Both the position numbers and the translations under genes were made by a program. A stretch of DNA of 64,000 nucleotides. It comes from Dimorphilus gyrociliatus. Its lineage: Eukaryota; Animalia; Annelida. The stretch lies in the NCBI GenBank assembly GCA_904063045.1, contig CAJFCJ010000002.1, positions 3,715,891 through 3,779,890 of the forward strand, written 5' to 3'. This document shows positions 23,313 through 31,516 of this stretch, piece after piece. The notes beneath the pieces are model-generated. The model ran no database searches. It had not been told where the DNA came from and was given only the letters and a program-made list of their open reading frames with translations. The number at the start of each line of letters is the position of its first letter. Positions within the stretch are counted from its first letter, which is position 1.

Positions 23313-25455
23313 ATGCCGGGTCACCCTCCTCCACCCGGAGCTCACCGGTCTACAGCACAATTGTTGGATCATCATTACGATAATCCTTCTTTTGTACCTG
23401 AAGTTCAGCCAAGAATTCCCCAATCTCAACCCAGATCGAATCTAGTTTCTGAAGTTCCTCCTCCAAAACCCCACAATGGAGGTTTGTTTAGAGCGAGAGA
23501 AAAATACGGACCTCCTGGTCATCAAAAGTATGGATTAGGCAAAGATTACGTTCCAAGGTACAGAACGGATTACGGTCATAACCGTTATGGAATTAAAATG
23601 GATTCAAATGGAAATCCTATACCCAGAAGGGTAGACCCTTTTGGTGGTAAGTTTAAAAGATTTTATCTAAATTCTTCATCTTAAACTTTGAAAATTTTTT
23701 CATTTTTACTTACGTCACAATCCAAAGAGTAAGCATGTATAAAATATTTGACTATTTACTTAACCATTTGCCAAGAAAACAACCATGTATGGGATTATCT
23801 GCGACGCCGCTGAGAAAAAGAATTAGATCAACGAATTTCATTAATCATTATTTATGTAGTTAATAAAAAAAAGTCTAGCAAAGTTAGAATTTTATCTTAA
23901 GCAATATAATTCTTGTAGGTGGGAGACATCCAGGAAATTCAATTTTCAGAAGAAATCACTTTGCTAATTTCGGTAGAATTGGGCGATACGGTCCACGAAA
24001 CCTTTGTGGTTGCAGCAGAGGTATTATTGCCGCAATAGTTGGTTCTTTGTTATTACTTGCAGCAGCGGGTATTGCTTTGGGCACTTATTTTGGCATTAAA
24101 GGTAGCTATTACTCTCTCGGTGGCTTCAACTTTTCTATTGCAGAGATATTTTCTTTCAGAGGCTACTAAAAGTCCTTTACCCGCGAATCCAATGGGTCCT
24201 ATACGATATTATCAATTGAACGGAGCTTTAGTTCCATGTTGGATAAGAACAACTACACCAACCACTACAACTCCTGCTCCCACAACAACAGCTCCGACTA
24301 CAACAATAATAACAACAACCGAGCTTACGACCACAGAAGCTACTACAACTGGTTATTCCTTAATTTATTTCCAACATAATACAGTATTAAAGTAAATAAA
24401 AAATCCGATTTTCTTCAGAAGCTACAACGACTGAAGCAACAACAACTGAACCCACAACTACGATACCAACTACTACAGTTGAGCAGACGACTACTTTAGG
24501 GACGACCACTTGCTATCCTTTTACTACCGATCCTACAACAACACTTGAACCAACAACAACTGTAAAACCAACAACAACAGTCGAACCAACAACAACAGTT
24601 GCACCAACAACAACTGTAAAGCCTACAACTACAGTTGAACCAACTACTCCAAAAGCAACAACACCTAAGTTGACTACCGAACAAATAACTACCATGCTAG
24701 GTAAGTAACAACATCTCTTTATTTATTAGATGTCTCATTTATTATCTTTTTAGTTACTACGGATAATAGTACCATTGATCCAAATGCTACTGAGCCGACA
24801 AAACCCTGTAAGTAATTCAGTAAATCCAACTTTTTTGTAATTATATGTTTTAATTTCAGTTTCGAATACAACTGATGAGCTGACGACTATCGAGACAACT
24901 AGAAAACAGACTACTTTAGCTCCTACAACTACTAAGGAACCAACTACAACTGTTGAAGAAACTACAACCGTTAAAGAAACAACTACAACAGTTCGAACCA
25001 CAACTACACCAACGACAGTAGCACCAGAGACAACAACTCTAACAAGTCCCGAAACTACTTTGTGTATTTGGGTGACAACGACAGGTACAACGGCCACCAC
25101 TCCCGAACCAACGACAACAGAAGCAACTACAACAGAACCAACTACAACGGAAGCAACAACCACGGAAGAAACAACGTATATTATATAGGAAAATTTATAG
25201 TATATCATATATAATTTATAATTCTTTAACAGCACAACAGAGGAGCCAACGACGACAGTTGAACAAACTACCACAACAACGACTCCTGCTCCAACGACTC
25301 CCCCTACGACTCTAAAGTATTGTGATGAATTAACTACGTCTTATACACTCGTTACTCTTTACCCACTTTCTGCTGGAGCCATTATGAATAGGGCTTTGAA
25401 TACTTTCACTTTTGGAATATATATTGCAGTCATTTTTATTGGTTTAATATTATAA
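23313..25455 (+). CDS. Thr-rich mucin-like membrane protein (N-terminal cytoplasmic part, TM, TTxP stalk, hydrophobic C-tail)
   Basis: Exon 1 is MPGHPPPP...VDPFG. Exon 2 contains the TM IIAAIVGSLLLLAAAGIALGTYFGI. Later exons are TTTP/TTVEPTTT-rich. The last exon ends SAGAIMNRALNTFTFGIYIAVIFIGLIL* (stop 25453-25455). Confidence 0.75.
24525..24670 (+). repeat. Degenerate coding tandem repeat (TTxEPTT-type units) of the mucin stalk
   Basis: Repeated CCAACAACAAC(A/T)GT.. units. Confidence 0.8.
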
Positions 25456-25802
25456 CCGAATTTCTGATTTCTTATAAAATAAGCTTTTTTTTGGATTGAT
25501 CAGTAAACGCATTTATATATTCATTTTGCATTTTATGTTTGCCTAGATTTAGCATCAACAATCTTTAAGATGTAAAATTTGTCTAATTATGTTGGATTTA
25601 AAACTGACGGCTTCCTGAATTATCAATCAAATGGAAACAATCACTTTTATTTATATATAAAACAAGTAACCAGTTACCTCAATTATATACTAATATATTA
25701 ATATTCTAATATATAGAATAAAACAATTAATAAATCGATATATTTCCCTTTCATGAAAAATGGAATTAATAGCATATGATAATAGCATAGAAAATATTTT
25801 GA

Positions 25803-28800
25803 CTAGAAATCTTCGTCATCTTTATCATCTTCCGTAGCTGAAGTTCCCATCATATTTTTTAACGACACACCAGTTTTAGGTATTGCAATAATCGGGTGTA
25901 TAGCTGACGAAATGGAATTAAACAAACGAGGATGAATAACTTCCTGCGACGCTAATAGTTGTTTCATCCTATGTCTTTCCTGTACAAAATTACATGAATT
26001 TTAAACAGTTCAAACCATACGTTATTCTTCAATACAAACTTTCGGTAATTCAAAGCAAGCTGGACAATTTTCAGAAATAATAGGAAGATGATTCTGTTCT
26101 GCAAACTTTCTAAGCTCTTTTTCTCTGACATAAACTAGTGGTCGAATAACACGAAGATCACCCTCTCTATAACAAAACAAATATATAGATTGCAAATTAT
26201 AACATAAAGTTGTGTAACTTTTTAAAACGCTTATTACGTACTTAACAGTATAGCAGGCTTTCATCGTTCGCAAAAGACCATTATGAAATAACGACATCAT
26301 AAATGACTCGGCTAGATCATCACGATGTTGACCTAACGCCAAAACATTGTATCCCTCTCGTCTAGCAGCATGATAAATTCTTCCTCTTTTCATCCGACTA
26401 CAAAAGCTACAAATAGAAGTACAGCCTTCTCCTAATTCTTTTGCTGAACCTATTATATCTATTAGTTTTTCATTACAGAATGAAAAAAAATAATTAGGAA
26501 TTTGTGTAAGTATATAAATTTCAAGTGCTATTACCTTGTTCTTCATAAAAATACGGAACATTTAGAGAGGCAAGGTAAGCCTTTAATGGCCGCGGATTGT
26601 AGGATTCGGCTTGAGGATCAATAGTAACGGCTCCTAATTGAAACTCTATCCCCTTGAACGTCAAGAAAATTATAGAAATGACTTATATTATTTAAAAAGT
26701 TAGACATATTACATACCTTACTTTTTGCATAAAATTGATATTGATGCATAGCGTGTAATAGCGATAAAGAATCTTTACCTCCAGAAAGACATACAAGTAA
26801 CTTATCATTATTCTTTATCATAGAAAATTCTTCAATCGCCTTTAAGAGAATTAATATGGAACTATAGGCTATTTAAAAGTTAATTATAAATAAAAACCTC
26901 AGTCATCGGCTTAAAAATTGGTTTAGGAGGAGCATACCATTTGCCAACAACCATAGCGCCCCTGTCTTCCTCTTCAGTTGATTTTCTTTTTCTAATTTTC
27001 AACGGGCAAGACATTTTTTCCTTTTTTGCGGGTGGTTTATAATCATCCTCAGAAGATTTTTCCGCAACTTTTGGTATATTAACTTCAGATTTATTCTCAA
27101 AGCCACTTTCAAAGAAATCTATTAAACTCTTCTGACTATCGCTTGCTTGACTCTTAGCAAGACTTGAATCGCTTCTTCTATTGCTTGCAATAGAAGAAAA
27201 TATCTTTTTTTTGTCAGAGCTATCAACTGTATTGTTTGAATATTCTATAGGTTGAAAGGGTGAGACATGATTAATAATCATATTGGGTGTTGAAAGCAAA
27301 TCCGATATTTCCGATGGTAGAATAAACCATCTAAATTTCGAAGATTCCTCATCAAAGAGGTTTCGTTGATCTCCTAATGTAGTTTTAATCTACAGGAAAT
27401 TAAATATGTTATTCAACTTTTCAATAAAAAATATGAAGCTTTACATGTTTCCCCGCTTGGAATATCTCTTCAGCTTTACGAAGACAATCTGAAAAATTTT
27501 TTGGTAATGGTCCTCTATCTTCAATTGGAGAATCAGTATATTCCATTTTTCCATTTTTATACGTTATGTTACCCAACCACTTTCGACTTTTGAAAGTGTG
27601 TAAATTTTTATGCCGCCATTCTCCAGTTTCAGGATTAAATGTATACTAAGAAAAAAATTAATCATAACACTAAAAGTACAATATAAAAATAAGAATTTAA
27701 TTCACTTGAGGCAGTAATATCCATGCATTTTCAGCAGTCATAGCTACTGCTTCCAAAATAAAATCAATTTCCTCTTCAGGAGCAAAATAAGGTAAATTCA
27801 AACGAACAAATCCTGGACTATAATAAAATTGAAATATTAAATACTATTGCCAAGAATAATGAAATATATATCTACCGTAAAATTTCTCTATTTGAGTACT
27901 CGCCATATCTTCTCAAATGAACTCTGTCTAAACGATCATCCTCAGCTAACAATTCTTCAAACTTTTTAGCAAGTTTTTCGTCTATTCCTAACAGGTCCTA
28001 GTTCGCAATTTAACAGAGACGGTAAAAGAAGCTACTTTTAGCAAAATGAGTTTATACTTCTGCATATGGGCCGGCACAAGCGCAGCCTCCCCTTGCTTGA
28101 ATTCCAAACACATCATTTAAAACAGCACAAACAAAATTATGATGCAAAAATAATGATTTATGCTTTACAACAAAGCTGAAAATAGGTAATCGTGGAACAA
28201 CTCGACCTCCAAGAAGTTTTAAATTTTCTAAATTTTCCCATTTACTGAATGCTTTTCTAAAAGCATAAATAATTATATATAATTAATTATTTTGCGAAAA
28301 AATTCAATATATATGCTTTATACTTTGTTAAATTTTCCTCCAACTCCATAATAATGTCCGTTCCTACCGCTCGCTTTAATTGAAAAATTAAACCAACCCT
28401 TATTGATTCCACAATAGCTGGGGTACCTCCTTCTTCTCTCAACTCAACTTCTTGTTGATACCGATGACCATTTCGCCGAACCTGAAAAATATATGAATGT
28501 AAAATGTAATATGATTTTTATGATTAACATCACAACATACAAAGAAAACCGTTCCTCCTCCAGCCTCCGATGGTACTTTATTATTAAATAGCTTCTTTTT
28601 AGCTACCAGCAGACCTGTAGTTTGGATACCGCCAACAAACTTATGAGGAGAGAGAAATACTGCATCCTTGTAACACTGGGGTGTTTCTGGCCTGATAGGA
28701 CAAAGAGTATGAGTTTTCTTCTTGAATATTAAGAATGAAATTCACTTTTCTATCGGATTCATATCTATCGCCGTATATGGAGCTGCTGAAGCATAATCCC

Positions 28801-29808
28801 AAAAAGCTAAACATCCTAGAGTGTGGAGGAGAGAAGAAATTGTATCTACATCCACCAAAATTCCAGTAATGTTTGATGCCGCGCAAAAGCATCCAATTTT
28901 TAAACGGTCTGTAATAGTCTCGTATTTCTAGCAAGATAGAAGAATGTAAGTAAAGATATGAATATATACATATATATATATATATATATAACAAAATAAT
29001 CTACCCTCAGCTGTTCAAGTAAATCATTCAAGTCAATTGCTCCTTGACTATCTTCTTTTATTCGAATTATATCTGCACCTATTTCTCTCCATGGTAATAA
29101 ATTTGAATGGTGCTCATATGGGCCCACAAAAATTACCTGAAGCAATGTAATCATACACATTTGATAGAAAAGTCACATAACTCTTACAGGTGACCTATCT
29201 AAGTTTAAAGCATGAATTAGCTTATGAACAGCTCCAGTGCATCCACTTCCAGTAAATATCACAGCATCATGTTCACTTGCGTTGACAGCATTTCGCACAA
29301 TATCTCTGAAGAGTAAGCACAAAGATGTGGCTATCTTAGATAATCTCGTAAAATTACCTTGCTTCATGTCTGTACATAGTTGTTTGCAGTGATGTAACGG
29401 ATGTCGTAGTATGAGTGTTACCATATTCGGGAAGAATTTCATCGCGTATGTAATCCTCAATAAATTGAAGTGATCTGATGTAATGTAATCTAACATGAGA
29501 ACAACTTTGAATCACATAGAAATATTAGCTTACTTTCCAGATGCCGTATAATCCGTATAAACAACTAGAAATATTTTTATTAAGAAAGTTAGCTTCTTCG
29601 AATACGTATTAATAGGCCTACCGTTTCGAAATCCGAAAGGTCCTGAAAAGACCTTTTCTCTGCCGATTACGTTTTCATATATATATTTTAGGAGAACCTC
29701 TACACTCTCCAGAGTTTCCTCGTCTTGAGAAGCGGTTTTACGGAATTTTGGGAGATCGTGAAACTTTCTCGCAACAGGCCTTTGAGAAATACTCATATTA
29801 TCACTCAT
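25803..29808 (-). CDS. Fusion protein: class-V PLP aminotransferase (SufS/CsdA-like cysteine desulfurase) + TtcA-like tRNA 2-thiocytidine sulfurtransferase
   Basis: N-half: YTDYTASGK, GNTHT, GPYEHHSNLLPW, PLP-lysine FLSPHKFVGG (~28625-28668), EEGGTP, FGIQARGGCACAGPY (~28058-28118). C-half: AIEEFSMIKNNDKLLVCLSGGKDS, CSFCSRMKRG, LGQHRDDLAES, VIRPLVYVRE, NCPAC. A 492-nt phase-0 linker exon (26898-27389) joins the halves with no stop. Stop at 25803-25805. Confidence 0.88.
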
Positions 29809-30169
29809 GTTTTTATTTAAGAGCTTTATTCGAAGACTAATAATTTGCTTGGTGACTCTTTTATTAAAAAGTATTGCTTAATTCTAATTGACTATTTTAA
29901 AAAAATAATCCAATTCAAAAGAACAGATATTTTATTGGCTATTTCTTTTAAAAACTACCACGTATTTAAGAAAGTAGCCTATAGAGGGCACCCTTTTCAT
30001 ATAGGCCTACTAACTGAAGTTGCAAAAGTGAATTATGCTTAACACGCTGAAAAAGATAATTTTTTTTTAGTTAAAAATTTGGTCAGTGCTAGATTATAAT
30101 ATATTTTATTTTATTATATATTTAAAATCTATATTTTGAAATTCGAAAACGACCTTTGAAAACCTGTAT

Positions 30170-30204: not shown

Positions 30205-31158
30205 ATGAGGTTATTAATTATCTCATTTTTATACGTGTTATAAGCTATATATACCTTAATTTTAATACCAATTTAGTCGGTTGTGTTTTTGTAGTTCACA
30301 TTGTTCAAATAAACTGAAAAATACTTTTATAAAAAGACTATAAAGTGTAAATTTATTTTCAGTACCCTGCGATTGCAGAAGAGGTTGGCGGCCACCGTTT
30401 TGAAATGCGGTAAAAACAAAATTTGGCTTGATCCTAATGAAACGAACGAAATTTCCAACGCAAACTCTCGTAAGTGTCAAACTTTCTGGATAATATTCAT
30501 CATTACTTGACATCTGACGTGATGGCACAATACAGACGTCATGAAACTCAGATGTCATCGTCAAATTTTATACTATATATACATTGATAGTAAAAGCATA
30601 TCTTTCTTTGCAACAGGACAAAACGTTCGTAAATTAGTTAAGGATGGTCTGATTATTCGCAAGCCTGTCGCAGTTCATAGTCGGGCCCGAGTTCGTAGAA
30701 ACGCTGAAGCTCGCAGAAAAGGCCGACACTGTGGAACCGGAAAGAGAAAGGGTACGGCTAACGCTCGTATGCCTGAGAAGATTCTTTGGATGAGAAGAAT
30801 GCGAGTATTGAGACGTTTGTTGAAGAGATACAGAGATTCTAAAAAAATTGATAGACATCTCTACCATGTTCTCTATTTGAAGTGCAAGGGTAAGTAAACT
30901 ATCCATCTCTTTTGCTGATCTATAATAATCTTTCCATAACTAATAGGTAACGTCTTTAAAAATAAGCGTGTGTTGATGGAACACATCCATAAAAAGAAGG
31001 CGGAACGTGCCAGAAGCAAACTTTTGGCTGATCAAGCTGAAGCCAGAAGACACAAGGTTAAGGAAGCTAGAAAGAGACGAGAGCAGAGAATTGCTGATAA
31101 GAAGCAAGAACAGTTGAGGCTCTACAGCAAGGAAGATTCCGCAACCAGTAAAAAATAA
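30205..31158 (+). CDS. RPL19: 60S ribosomal protein L19 (eL19), 4 coding exons
   Basis: MS|[35 protein letters not shown]|[53 protein letters not shown]...|[19 protein letters not shown]... Confidence 0.98.
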
Positions 31159-31516
31159 GTGAATACCATTTAAGAAATACACTTTATTTTTGGCTTGAAT
31201 GTAAAAAAATGTATTTCTAAGAGTTCACGTGTATTCGGTTTATAATACGGGAAAGCGCACATACAATGAATTTTTGAAAATCATTTTTAAGATGCAATCA
31301 AATCTTTTCTAAAATTGTATTAATCCGGAATTAAAGTATTCACACGAACTAAGTTTTTTGTAGTTGTTCTATAATCAGAAAAATATAGGTTCATCATTTG
31401 CAGGTATGCCTCAGAATTAAAATGCCAAAATATTTTTTAAAAACATGCATGGCACATGGTAGTAAACTAACTAAAAATTATAGACATATTATGTTTGAGA
31501 CAGCGGATCTTAAGAA

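Follow-up and report, generated by a model that had tools for sequence, protein, structure and literature searches.

Can a single animal polypeptide both release sulfur from cysteine and insert it into tRNA? The question is raised by a gene of the annelid Dimorphilus gyrociliatus, found in a 64,000-nucleotide stretch of contig CAJFCJ010000002.1 (the window, whose own positions are used below), in which a SufS-like cysteine desulfurase domain of the pyridoxal phosphate (PLP) type is followed by a domain resembling the tRNA 2-thiocytidine biosynthesis protein TtcA of Escherichia coli. We are nearly certain that this is a true expressed fusion gene. Judged from its sequence, it is the orthologue of an old eukaryotic fusion that would hold two enzymes on one tethered polypeptide, and we think with moderate confidence that the product makes 2-thiocytidine at tRNA position 32 (s2C32) with sulfur supplied in cis. 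The finding of the fusion itself is a rediscovery, since genes of this kind have already been described in a preprint and annotated in public genomes. A preliminary description of the window had supposed that similar fusions might exist uncharacterised in other invertebrates; they do exist, but the preprint describes them and many genomes carry them annotated, so that the novelty had been estimated too highly.

Before 2026, s2C32 and TtcA were regarded as prokaryotic, and a 2017 review lists s2C32 for bacteria and archaea only (PMC5372739). A preprint of 28 September 2026 then mapped s2C32 in the tRNA-Lys-UUU of Aplysia and named a fused 'IscS-TtcA' gene of Aplysia californica, LOC101861551 (1177 amino acids), as the candidate s2C32 enzyme; this is the only TtcA homologue reported in Aplysia (bioRxiv 10.64898/2026.09.27.754811). 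The same study reports the fusion in 28 mollusc species with the cysteine pattern C-CSFC-CPAC, mentions BLAST matches in birds as well as insects (without displaying the data), proposes the function without genetics or enzymology, and terms the N-domain IscS, with a catalytic cysteine that was not identifiable (10.64898/2026.09.27.754811). Several public annotations automatically name orthologues 'tRNA 2-thiocytidine biosynthesis protein TtcA'. The present analysis is of value mainly in confirming and refining this very recent work, not as a discovery. The refinements are a sulfur donor of the SufS type, a named catalytic cysteine, and a pan-metazoan spread that includes at least one protist.

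Gene model, transcripts and linker

The fused gene lies on the minus strand, as do all features below unless marked (+), and runs from an ATG at 29808 to a stop codon at 25805-25803. The complete coding sequence (25803..29808) is defined by our gene model, by identity to a public protein and by spliced contigs, and its limits are exactly those of the preliminary description. The model comprises 18 exons separated by 17 GT-AG introns of 51-77 nucleotides, and its open reading frame of 2964 nucleotides encodes 987 amino acids. Exons 1-6 lie at 29808-29622, 29564-29534, 29474-29358, 29305-29188, 29136-29005 and 28927-28746, exons 7-12 at 28691-28541, 28481-28324, 28256-28058, 27997-27876, 27817-27706 and 27645-27445, and exons 13-18 at 27389-26898, 26839-26717, 26652-26535, 26458-26242, 26166-26040 and 25979-25803. 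Exons 13 and 14 begin at 27389 and 26839, respectively, the two junction positions singled out earlier, and every motif quoted at that stage (EHHSN, SPHK, RGGCACA, SGGKDS, CSFC, GQHRDD, IRPL and CPAC) is present in the spliced frame. The predicted protein is 100% identical over 987 amino acids to the public D. gyrociliatus protein DgyrCDS1743 (P0263), which was reached through an exon 16 search of 1.8 billion representatives followed by a word-indexed search; exon 9 alone, used as an ESM Atlas query, gave weak and uninformative matches.

Transcript data came from run X1 (2017) and from runs X3, X4 and X5 of another study (2020), with X2 as a genomic run. In each of the four transcript runs one contig skips the modelled introns, so that all 17 are removed in one molecule, and the contigs contain one mRNA with one open reading frame, which bears out the earlier claim of a single spliced frame joining both domains. 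Contig joints, ending in CT..AC on the plus strand, are listed for sixteen of the 17 introns. The joint of the remaining one, intron 5, is unlisted because the read-laying tool masked a (TA)n repeat; its removal follows from contig arithmetic, the contig pieces flanking the unlisted joint being separated by exactly 398 nucleotides, which corresponds to exons 2-5. The repeat is a (TA)n microsatellite within intron 5, at 28954-29000. Run X2, which is genomic, aligns colinearly with the window and is unspliced. The contigs of X3 (3258 nucleotides) and X4 (3116 nucleotides) start and stop at the borders of the fused gene, and merging of the X1 contig with a neighbouring gene is therefore not needed to explain continuity. 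The longest single-gene contig, that of X3, gives an mRNA extent of 25683..29982, with about 174 nucleotides of 5' and about 120 nucleotides of 3' untranslated region.

All transcript contigs are uninterrupted across exons 12-14, the stretch where two separate mRNAs would have had to part. Exon 13 (26898..27389; 492 nucleotides, 164 codons, residues 571-734) holds the end of the desulfurase-like homology, to about residue 599, then the entire linker and the first TtcA-homologous residues, of which 726-734 align with residues 20-28 of E. coli TtcA. Its Ser/Lys-rich frame is stop-free, as had been noted, over all 164 codons (chance about 2e-6, given the base composition of the exon); 7 and 24 stops occur in the remaining two frames. 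A mis-join of two genes is excluded by the content of exon 13 together with the continuous contigs. Bacterial contamination, mis-assembly or a gene-prediction chimera might be suspected where both domains have close bacterial relatives; against this stand the 17 spliceosomal introns, all removed in RNA, a base composition like that of the neighbouring sequence, animal genes on the flanks, an exon 13 that spans both homologies, and orthologues across Metazoa. The 18-exon model, the full match to DgyrCDS1743 and the spliced contigs refute an artefact, to which we leave practically no probability, and the description of an intron-rich animal gene free of bacterial contamination was correct.

An AlphaFold2 model built on an 89-sequence alignment has a mean predicted local distance difference test (pLDDT) score of 85 and a predicted template modelling (TM) score of 0.76, with disorder limited to residues 1-14, 640-715 and an acidic tail. 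Residues 640-715 (26955..27182; about 75 residues, pLDDT <50) form a disordered Ser/Lys/Glu-rich linker that is without conservation and varies from 24 to 595 amino acids among orthologues. Such a linker, with the minor isoforms that short-read contigs are compatible with, would suit two separate working proteins that arise by linker cleavage or from internal isoforms and are merely co-regulated by the fusion, and cleavage is raised as a possibility in the preprint (10.64898/2026.09.27.754811). We consider two separate products very improbable, given contigs that are continuous across exons 12-14, a stop-free exon that contains parts of both domains, and a fused order that is kept in more than 130 full-length orthologues; tethering also fits the need of a type II desulfurase without an acceptor protein. 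An NLS-like (nuclear localization signal-like) basic cluster in the linker, KIRKRK (residues 701-706), was rejected as a conserved feature, a basic cluster being present in 38 of 133 orthologues.

The disordered acidic C-terminal tail of the AlphaFold2 model (residues 976-987, 25806..25841) ends in DEDF, and an acidic tail is found in 87 of the 133 orthologues. Cytosolic iron-sulfur clients including Ctu1 are reported to carry a signal, [LIM][DES][WF], for the targeting complex of the cytosolic iron-sulfur assembly pathway (10.1101/2023.05.19.541488); the DEDF end resembles it, and such a signal would speak for iron-sulfur loading in the cytosol. This tripeptide was likewise discarded as a conserved feature of the fusion family, in which 3 of 133 orthologues match strictly and 7 of 133 match [DES][WF].

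The TtcA-like and SufS-type halves

Both domains are recognized by Pfam on the whole protein, as the preliminary description had anticipated: Aminotran_5 at 8.7e-42 (residues 64-424) and ATP_bind_3 at 2e-16 (residues 747-917). The C-half is a TtcA-like PP-loop ATP-pyrophosphatase domain delimited by NCBIfam and BLASTP at residues 722-975 (25842..26936 including introns). Residues 690-987 score 209.9 bits (E 4.7e-62) on the NCBIfam TtcA model NF007972, and the competing models reach 69 (TilS N-domain), 52 (TtuA) and 29 bits (NcsA, the archaeal counterpart that alone represents the Ctu1 group in the model library). TtcA thus leads the other families by more than 140 bits. In a BLASTP comparison with E. 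coli TtcA, identity is 35% over 237 amino acids (E 3e-44). The earlier assignment of a complete TtcA-type domain is upheld by this lead over TilS, TtuA and NcsA and by the retained iron-sulfur cysteines.

The SGGKDS PP-loop (residues 753-758, 26768..26785) aligns with SGGKDS of TtcA, and each of its residues is at least 90% conserved in 89 orthologues. The CSFC motif (residues 831-834, 26400..26411) would provide ligands of a [4Fe-4S] cluster, and CPAC (residues 921-924, 26055..26066) is the second CxxC. Cys831 and Cys834, conserved in 100% of 133 full-length orthologues, correspond to E. coli TtcA Cys122 and Cys125, and Cys921 and Cys924, conserved in 99%, to Cys210 and Cys213. GQHRDD lies at residues 857-862, with its HxDD (H859, D861, D862) invariant in the orthologue alignments, and IRPL at 894-897. 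The only cysteines of the domain are 751, 827, 831, 834, 883, 921 and 924, and the N- and C-terminal zinc-finger CxxC pairs of the TtuA/Ncs6 type are absent.

E. coli TtcA has only three essential cysteines and requires a [4Fe-4S] cluster, and Bouvier et al. consider it likely that sulfur is bound to the free iron of that cluster (PMC4081106). Their numbering gives the third essential cysteine as 222 and further cysteines as 46, 200 and 219 (PMC4081106). The essential three are the pair of the central CxxC and the second cysteine of the distal one, with which Cys831, Cys834 and Cys924 of the fused protein align. The cysteines of the 311-residue TtcA of strain MG1655 (E. coli ttcA, L001:16014-16949) are 45, 122, 125, 191, 210, 213, 255 and 290. 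Since 210/213 is the only matching CxxC in that sequence, the published 219/222 are most likely its Cys210 and Cys213. The Protein Data Bank (PDB) contains no TtcA structure; chains of TtuA, NcsA and TilS come nearest in sequence.

The closest stand-alone relatives of the C-half are algal-type proteins, for example of Rhodomonas, and a bacterial group of about 250 amino acids. This group, found in Thiobacillaceae, Hydrogenophilaceae and Thermithiobacillus (P0304, P0374, P0385 and about 100 others), is the nearest relative among prokaryotes; it is 50-56% identical to the C-half and 32-38% to E. coli TtcA, scores 201-226 bits on the TtcA model, and is often named merely 'ATP-binding protein' by NCBI. 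By these similarities the animal C-half falls in a TtcA-like subclade outside the coverage of the curated model. A rooted tree of PP-loop proteins that included E. coli TtcA and TilS was set aside, with reference branches of 5.7 and 10 that settled neither the root nor the origin of the eukaryotic domain.

The N-half has a SufS-like PLP fold core of class V at residues 40-495 (27730..29691 including introns), delimited by hhalign and by Foldseek searches of PDB and Swiss-Prot. SufS is its best NCBIfam model, with 135 bits over residues 62-425, followed by CsdA with 72; the IscS models give 25-26 bits and align residues 62-291 only. The best structures by both sequence and fold are all SufS proteins (8d8s, 5zsk, 4q75 and E. 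coli SufS), with target-normalized TM scores of 0.83-0.90 over residues 40-495. A profile of 33 N-halves aligned to E. coli SufS with an hhalign probability of 99.7. In that alignment, with SufS numbering verified on the MG1655 translation, His160/His161 pair with SufS His123/His124, Asp239 with Asp200, Ser270-x-His272-Lys273 with Ser223-x-His225-Lys226, Arg414 with Arg359, Cys417 with His362, Cys419 with Cys364 and Arg471 with Arg379. On this combined evidence the N-half is classed as a SufS-type, not an IscS-type, desulfurase domain, in agreement with the group II (SufS/CsdA-like) assignment first made, in that the PLP lysine and the loop cysteine align with SufS Lys226 and Cys364.

Within the EHHSN motif (residues 159-163, 29101..29115) H160 is invariant in 89 orthologues, as are S270, H272 and K273 of the SPHK motif (residues 270-273, 28640..28651), in which Lys273 is the predicted PLP Schiff-base lysine. 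The catalytic loop (28067..28093, RGGCACA at 414-420) is a variant, reading RGGCACAGP against RxGHHCAxP in SufS, so that the two histidines ahead of the cysteine are replaced by Cys-Ala and a second invariant cysteine, Cys417, stands two residues ahead of Cys419. Both are conserved in 100% of the 133 orthologues. In type I (IscS/NifS) enzymes, by contrast with the short loop of type II, the catalytic cysteine sits on a long flexible loop (SSGSAC). By alignment to SufS, Cys419, the second of the invariant CxC, is the predicted catalytic cysteine, and the Cys417/Cys419 pair is most likely the Cys448/Cys450 pair of the preprint. Relative to SufS, about 40 amino acids are inserted after the cysteine loop. 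A folded C-terminal extension follows at residues 496-630 (27210..27729), supported by pLDDT values mostly >90 and by conservation; it includes a conserved RWFxLPSE motif (residues 590-597, 27332-27309), and stand-alone relatives of the N-half carry it too.

Distribution of the fusion and its relatives

The domain order of the fusion is preserved in more than 130 full-length orthologues. The combination of Aminotran_5 with ATP_bind_3 is common, a shrimp orthologue having 7823 matches among database proteins at E <1e-20. Named animal orthologues share 50-57% full-length identity, and the mollusc members 52-57%. Hosts include sponges (Corticium, Oscarella), a placozoan (Trichoplax), cnidarians (Nematostella, Clytia, Acropora), molluscs, annelids, a brachiopod, a nemertean, a rotifer (Seison), tardigrades, chelicerates, crustaceans (including Daphnia), a springtail, hemimetabolous insects, echinoderms (including sea urchins), hemichordates, amphioxus and tunicates, and one non-animal host is the alveolate Amoebophrya. 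The D. gyrociliatus gene belongs to this metazoan family of the Aplysia LOC101861551 type, having Aminotran_5 and ATP_bind_3 domains, the CxC and the C-CSFC-CPAC pattern on one mRNA. Vertebrates, nematodes, flatworms and holometabolous insects were found in neither of two lists of the 120 best matches, and this absence among the best matches suggests loss in these groups. The fusion is thus pan-metazoan with at least one protist.

Relatives of the N-half also occur alone. With the RGGCACAGP-type loop motif as the search pattern, stand-alone proteins that we call "long SufS-like" were found in at least 582 bacterial species, including Myxococcota, Actinomycetota, Chloroflexota, Gemmatimonadota and Acidobacteriota, and are 44-51% identical to the N-half over about 560 amino acids. 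They are about 550 amino acids long, carry the RGGCxCAGP loop and the C-terminal extension, align to about residue 599, and score 111-127 bits on the SufS model. The ESM Atlas holds similar clusters of 550-670 amino acids in oomycetes, land plants and cnidarians, and Atlas structures of stand-alones superpose with TM scores of 0.88-0.91 over residues 10-600. We found no NCBIfam model of their own for the bacterial stand-alones, and no described function for the family, at which no literature search was aimed. In a tree of N-halves (three bacterial rows of which were wrongly extracted and are to be disregarded), the metazoan fused sequences form one clade and the bacterial stand-alones another, with Shimodaira-Hasegawa-like approximate likelihood ratio supports of 95 and 100, respectively. 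The protist fusions were not placed, and the tree therefore decides for neither a single nor a multiple origin of the fusion.

Two genes adjoin the fused gene in D. gyrociliatus. A multi-exon ribosomal protein L19-like gene at 30340-31160 (+), recognized from translations of open reading frames only, starts about 530 bp upstream of the fused ATG in divergent orientation, and a bidirectional promoter region is probably common to the two. On the other side, Thr/Pro-rich mucin-like repeats (TTTEATTTEPTTT) at 24387-25420 (+) belong to a gene that converges on the fused one. The contig of X1 (5041 nucleotides) extends 1.7 kb beyond the 3' end of the fused gene toward the mucin-like gene, whereas the X3 and X4 contigs end at the border; the 3' ends of the two genes therefore probably overlap or abut. 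A tRNA scan of the window found no tRNA genes.

A candidate sulfur relay and known systems

We infer, with outside correlative support from the s2C32 of Aplysia, that a self-contained sulfur relay forms s2C in the fused protein. The PLP domain would take sulfur from free L-cysteine and form a persulfide on Cys419, perhaps assisted by the invariant Cys417. The TtcA-like domain would carry a [4Fe-4S] cluster on Cys831, Cys834 and Cys924 with one iron left free, and the tether would let this domain pick up the sulfur on that iron, either within one chain or from the partner chain of a dimer. The PP-loop would then adenylate C2 of cytidine 32 in a cytosolic tRNA, and the cluster-bound sulfide would displace AMP to give 2-thiocytidine. 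In this way the fusion could serve as a dedicated cytosolic sulfur source for s2C32 in non-vertebrate animals.

Several observations weigh against this proposal. The link to s2C32 in Aplysia is one of co-occurrence. The C-half, at 209.9 bits, misses the TtcA equivalog cut-off of 272 bits (E. coli TtcA scores 514) and is thus placed in a diverged TtcA-like subfamily with a predicted specificity. The N-half similarly scores 135 bits against a SufS subfamily cut-off of 475 (TIGR01979), a shortfall that places it too in a diverged subfamily, of desulfurases, whose specificity is a prediction. Type II desulfurases normally depend on a dedicated acceptor (SufE, SufU or CsdE); NCBIfam and Pfam scans, run on the fused protein only, recognized no SufE, SufU or CsdE domain in it, and Cys557, the only other partly conserved cysteine of the extension, is kept in 65% of orthologues. 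Among 80 bacterial loci with N-half relatives, none has a PP-loop open reading frame within 8 kb, and no desulfurase lies beside the Thermithiobacillus TtcA-like gene, the one bacterial TtcA-like locus inspected. In the bacterial loci inspected, relatives of one half do not lie beside relatives of the other, and the partnership is therefore without operon precedent. Further, short-read contigs leave room for extra isoforms or for protein cleavage in the linker.

The shortfall of the C-half bears on whether its target is tRNA C32 at all, as the domain could instead thiolate a different position or nucleoside, RNAs of another class or a small molecule. The closest bacterial relatives share the low scores (200-226 bits with the C-half included) and often the bare 'ATP-binding protein' name, and the E. 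coli enzyme is only 35% identical and sits on a very long branch of the PP-loop tree. We nevertheless judge a different target unlikely, in view of the lead of TtcA over TilS, TtuA and NcsA, the absence of the extra TtuA/Ncs6 zinc-finger cysteines, and the presence of s2C32 in Aplysia, whose only reported TtcA homologue is the fusion.

The loci of the stand-alone relatives raise a similar doubt about the N-domain, which may not be the sulfur donor for thiolation: it could build or repair the cluster that its own C-domain carries, use selenocysteine or cysteine sulfinate as a substrate, or catalyse an unrelated PLP reaction inherited from the stand-alone family. The relatives are widespread (at least 582 bacterial species, plants, oomycetes and cnidarians) and unlinked to PP-loop genes, with no gene family recurring as a neighbour in more than 10 of the 80 bacterial loci, which indicates that the N-half family has a function of its own. 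The loop reads GGCAC against GHHC in SufS, and SufS/CsdB enzymes are known to cleave selenocysteine as well. A role other than sulfur donation nonetheless appears improbable, as all SufS cysteine-desulfuration residues checked are kept, and a permanent fusion to a sulfur-inserting enzyme, kept from sponges through to tunicates, finds its simplest explanation in substrate channelling. Moreover, sulfur transfer to the cluster and to the substrate may be one chemical event under the mechanism of Bouvier et al. (PMC4081106). The in-cis relay to s2C32 accordingly remains the reading that we favour, at the moderate confidence given above.

If it is true, most animal phyla modify the anticodon loop in this way and possess a cysteine desulfurase in the cytosol, both of which vertebrates apparently lack, and the apparent absence from vertebrates, nematodes and holometabolous insects would explain how the gene was overlooked. 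The fusion would provide a test case for a type II desulfurase that hands sulfur to an iron-sulfur thiolase without a carrier protein, and for the free iron of a cluster as a sulfur relay. Nematostella, Clytia, Daphnia, sea urchins, amphioxus and tardigrades are all tractable and carry the fusion, and the hypothesis is thus directly testable. A wider proposal, which we put forward only tentatively and with the chances rather against it, is that the N-half represents a so-far uncharacterised class of cysteine desulfurases ("long SufS-like", with a CxC loop and a 135-residue extension) that is possibly acceptor-free. In the fused form it would transfer persulfide sulfur in cis, directly onto the free iron of the [4Fe-4S] cluster, giving non-vertebrate animals a cytosolic tRNA thiolation independent of NFS1 and URM1, and s2C32 would be widespread in animals, lost in vertebrates and absent from the classical models.

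Among known systems, the closest is Aplysia LOC101861551, which shares the domain order, the variable linker, the C-CSFC-CPAC pattern, the invariant CxC and the PLP lysine; the D. gyrociliatus protein is shorter in its linker and overall (987 amino acids), and s2C was mapped in Aplysia tRNA, whereas for D. gyrociliatus it is a prediction from the gene. With E. coli TtcA (b1344) the alignable SGGKDS, both CxxC motifs, HRDD and IRPL are held in common, and by analogy the mechanism is probably common too, with adenylation followed by transfer of sulfide from the [4Fe-4S] cluster. In contrast, the E. coli enzyme, 311 amino acids long, stands alone and obtains sulfur from a separate type I desulfurase, IscS, and the animal domain is nearer to the bacterial subgroup of about 250 amino acids (50-56% identity).

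The SufS/CsdA enzymes (of E. coli, B. subtilis and S. aureus; 5zsk, 8d8s) resemble the N-half in fold, the His-His pair, Asp, Ser-x-His-Lys, the two Arg residues and Cys, whereas the N-half is only about 22-25% identical to them and differs by its RGGCACAGP loop, its insert of about 40 amino acids and its folded extension of about 135 amino acids. The "long SufS-like" stand-alones (550-670 amino acids) share the extension and the RGGCxCAGP loop, but are without a PP-loop domain. Lastly, the cytosolic pathway for 2-thiouridine at position 34 (s2U34; Nfs1, Tum1, Uba4, Urm1 and Ctu1/Ctu2) likewise starts from a desulfurase and ends in a PP-loop iron-sulfur thiolase, Ctu1/Ncs6, of the TtcA/TtuA superfamily. 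Unlike the relay proposed here, it works through a thiocarboxylated ubiquitin-like carrier in a multi-protein relay and targets U34.

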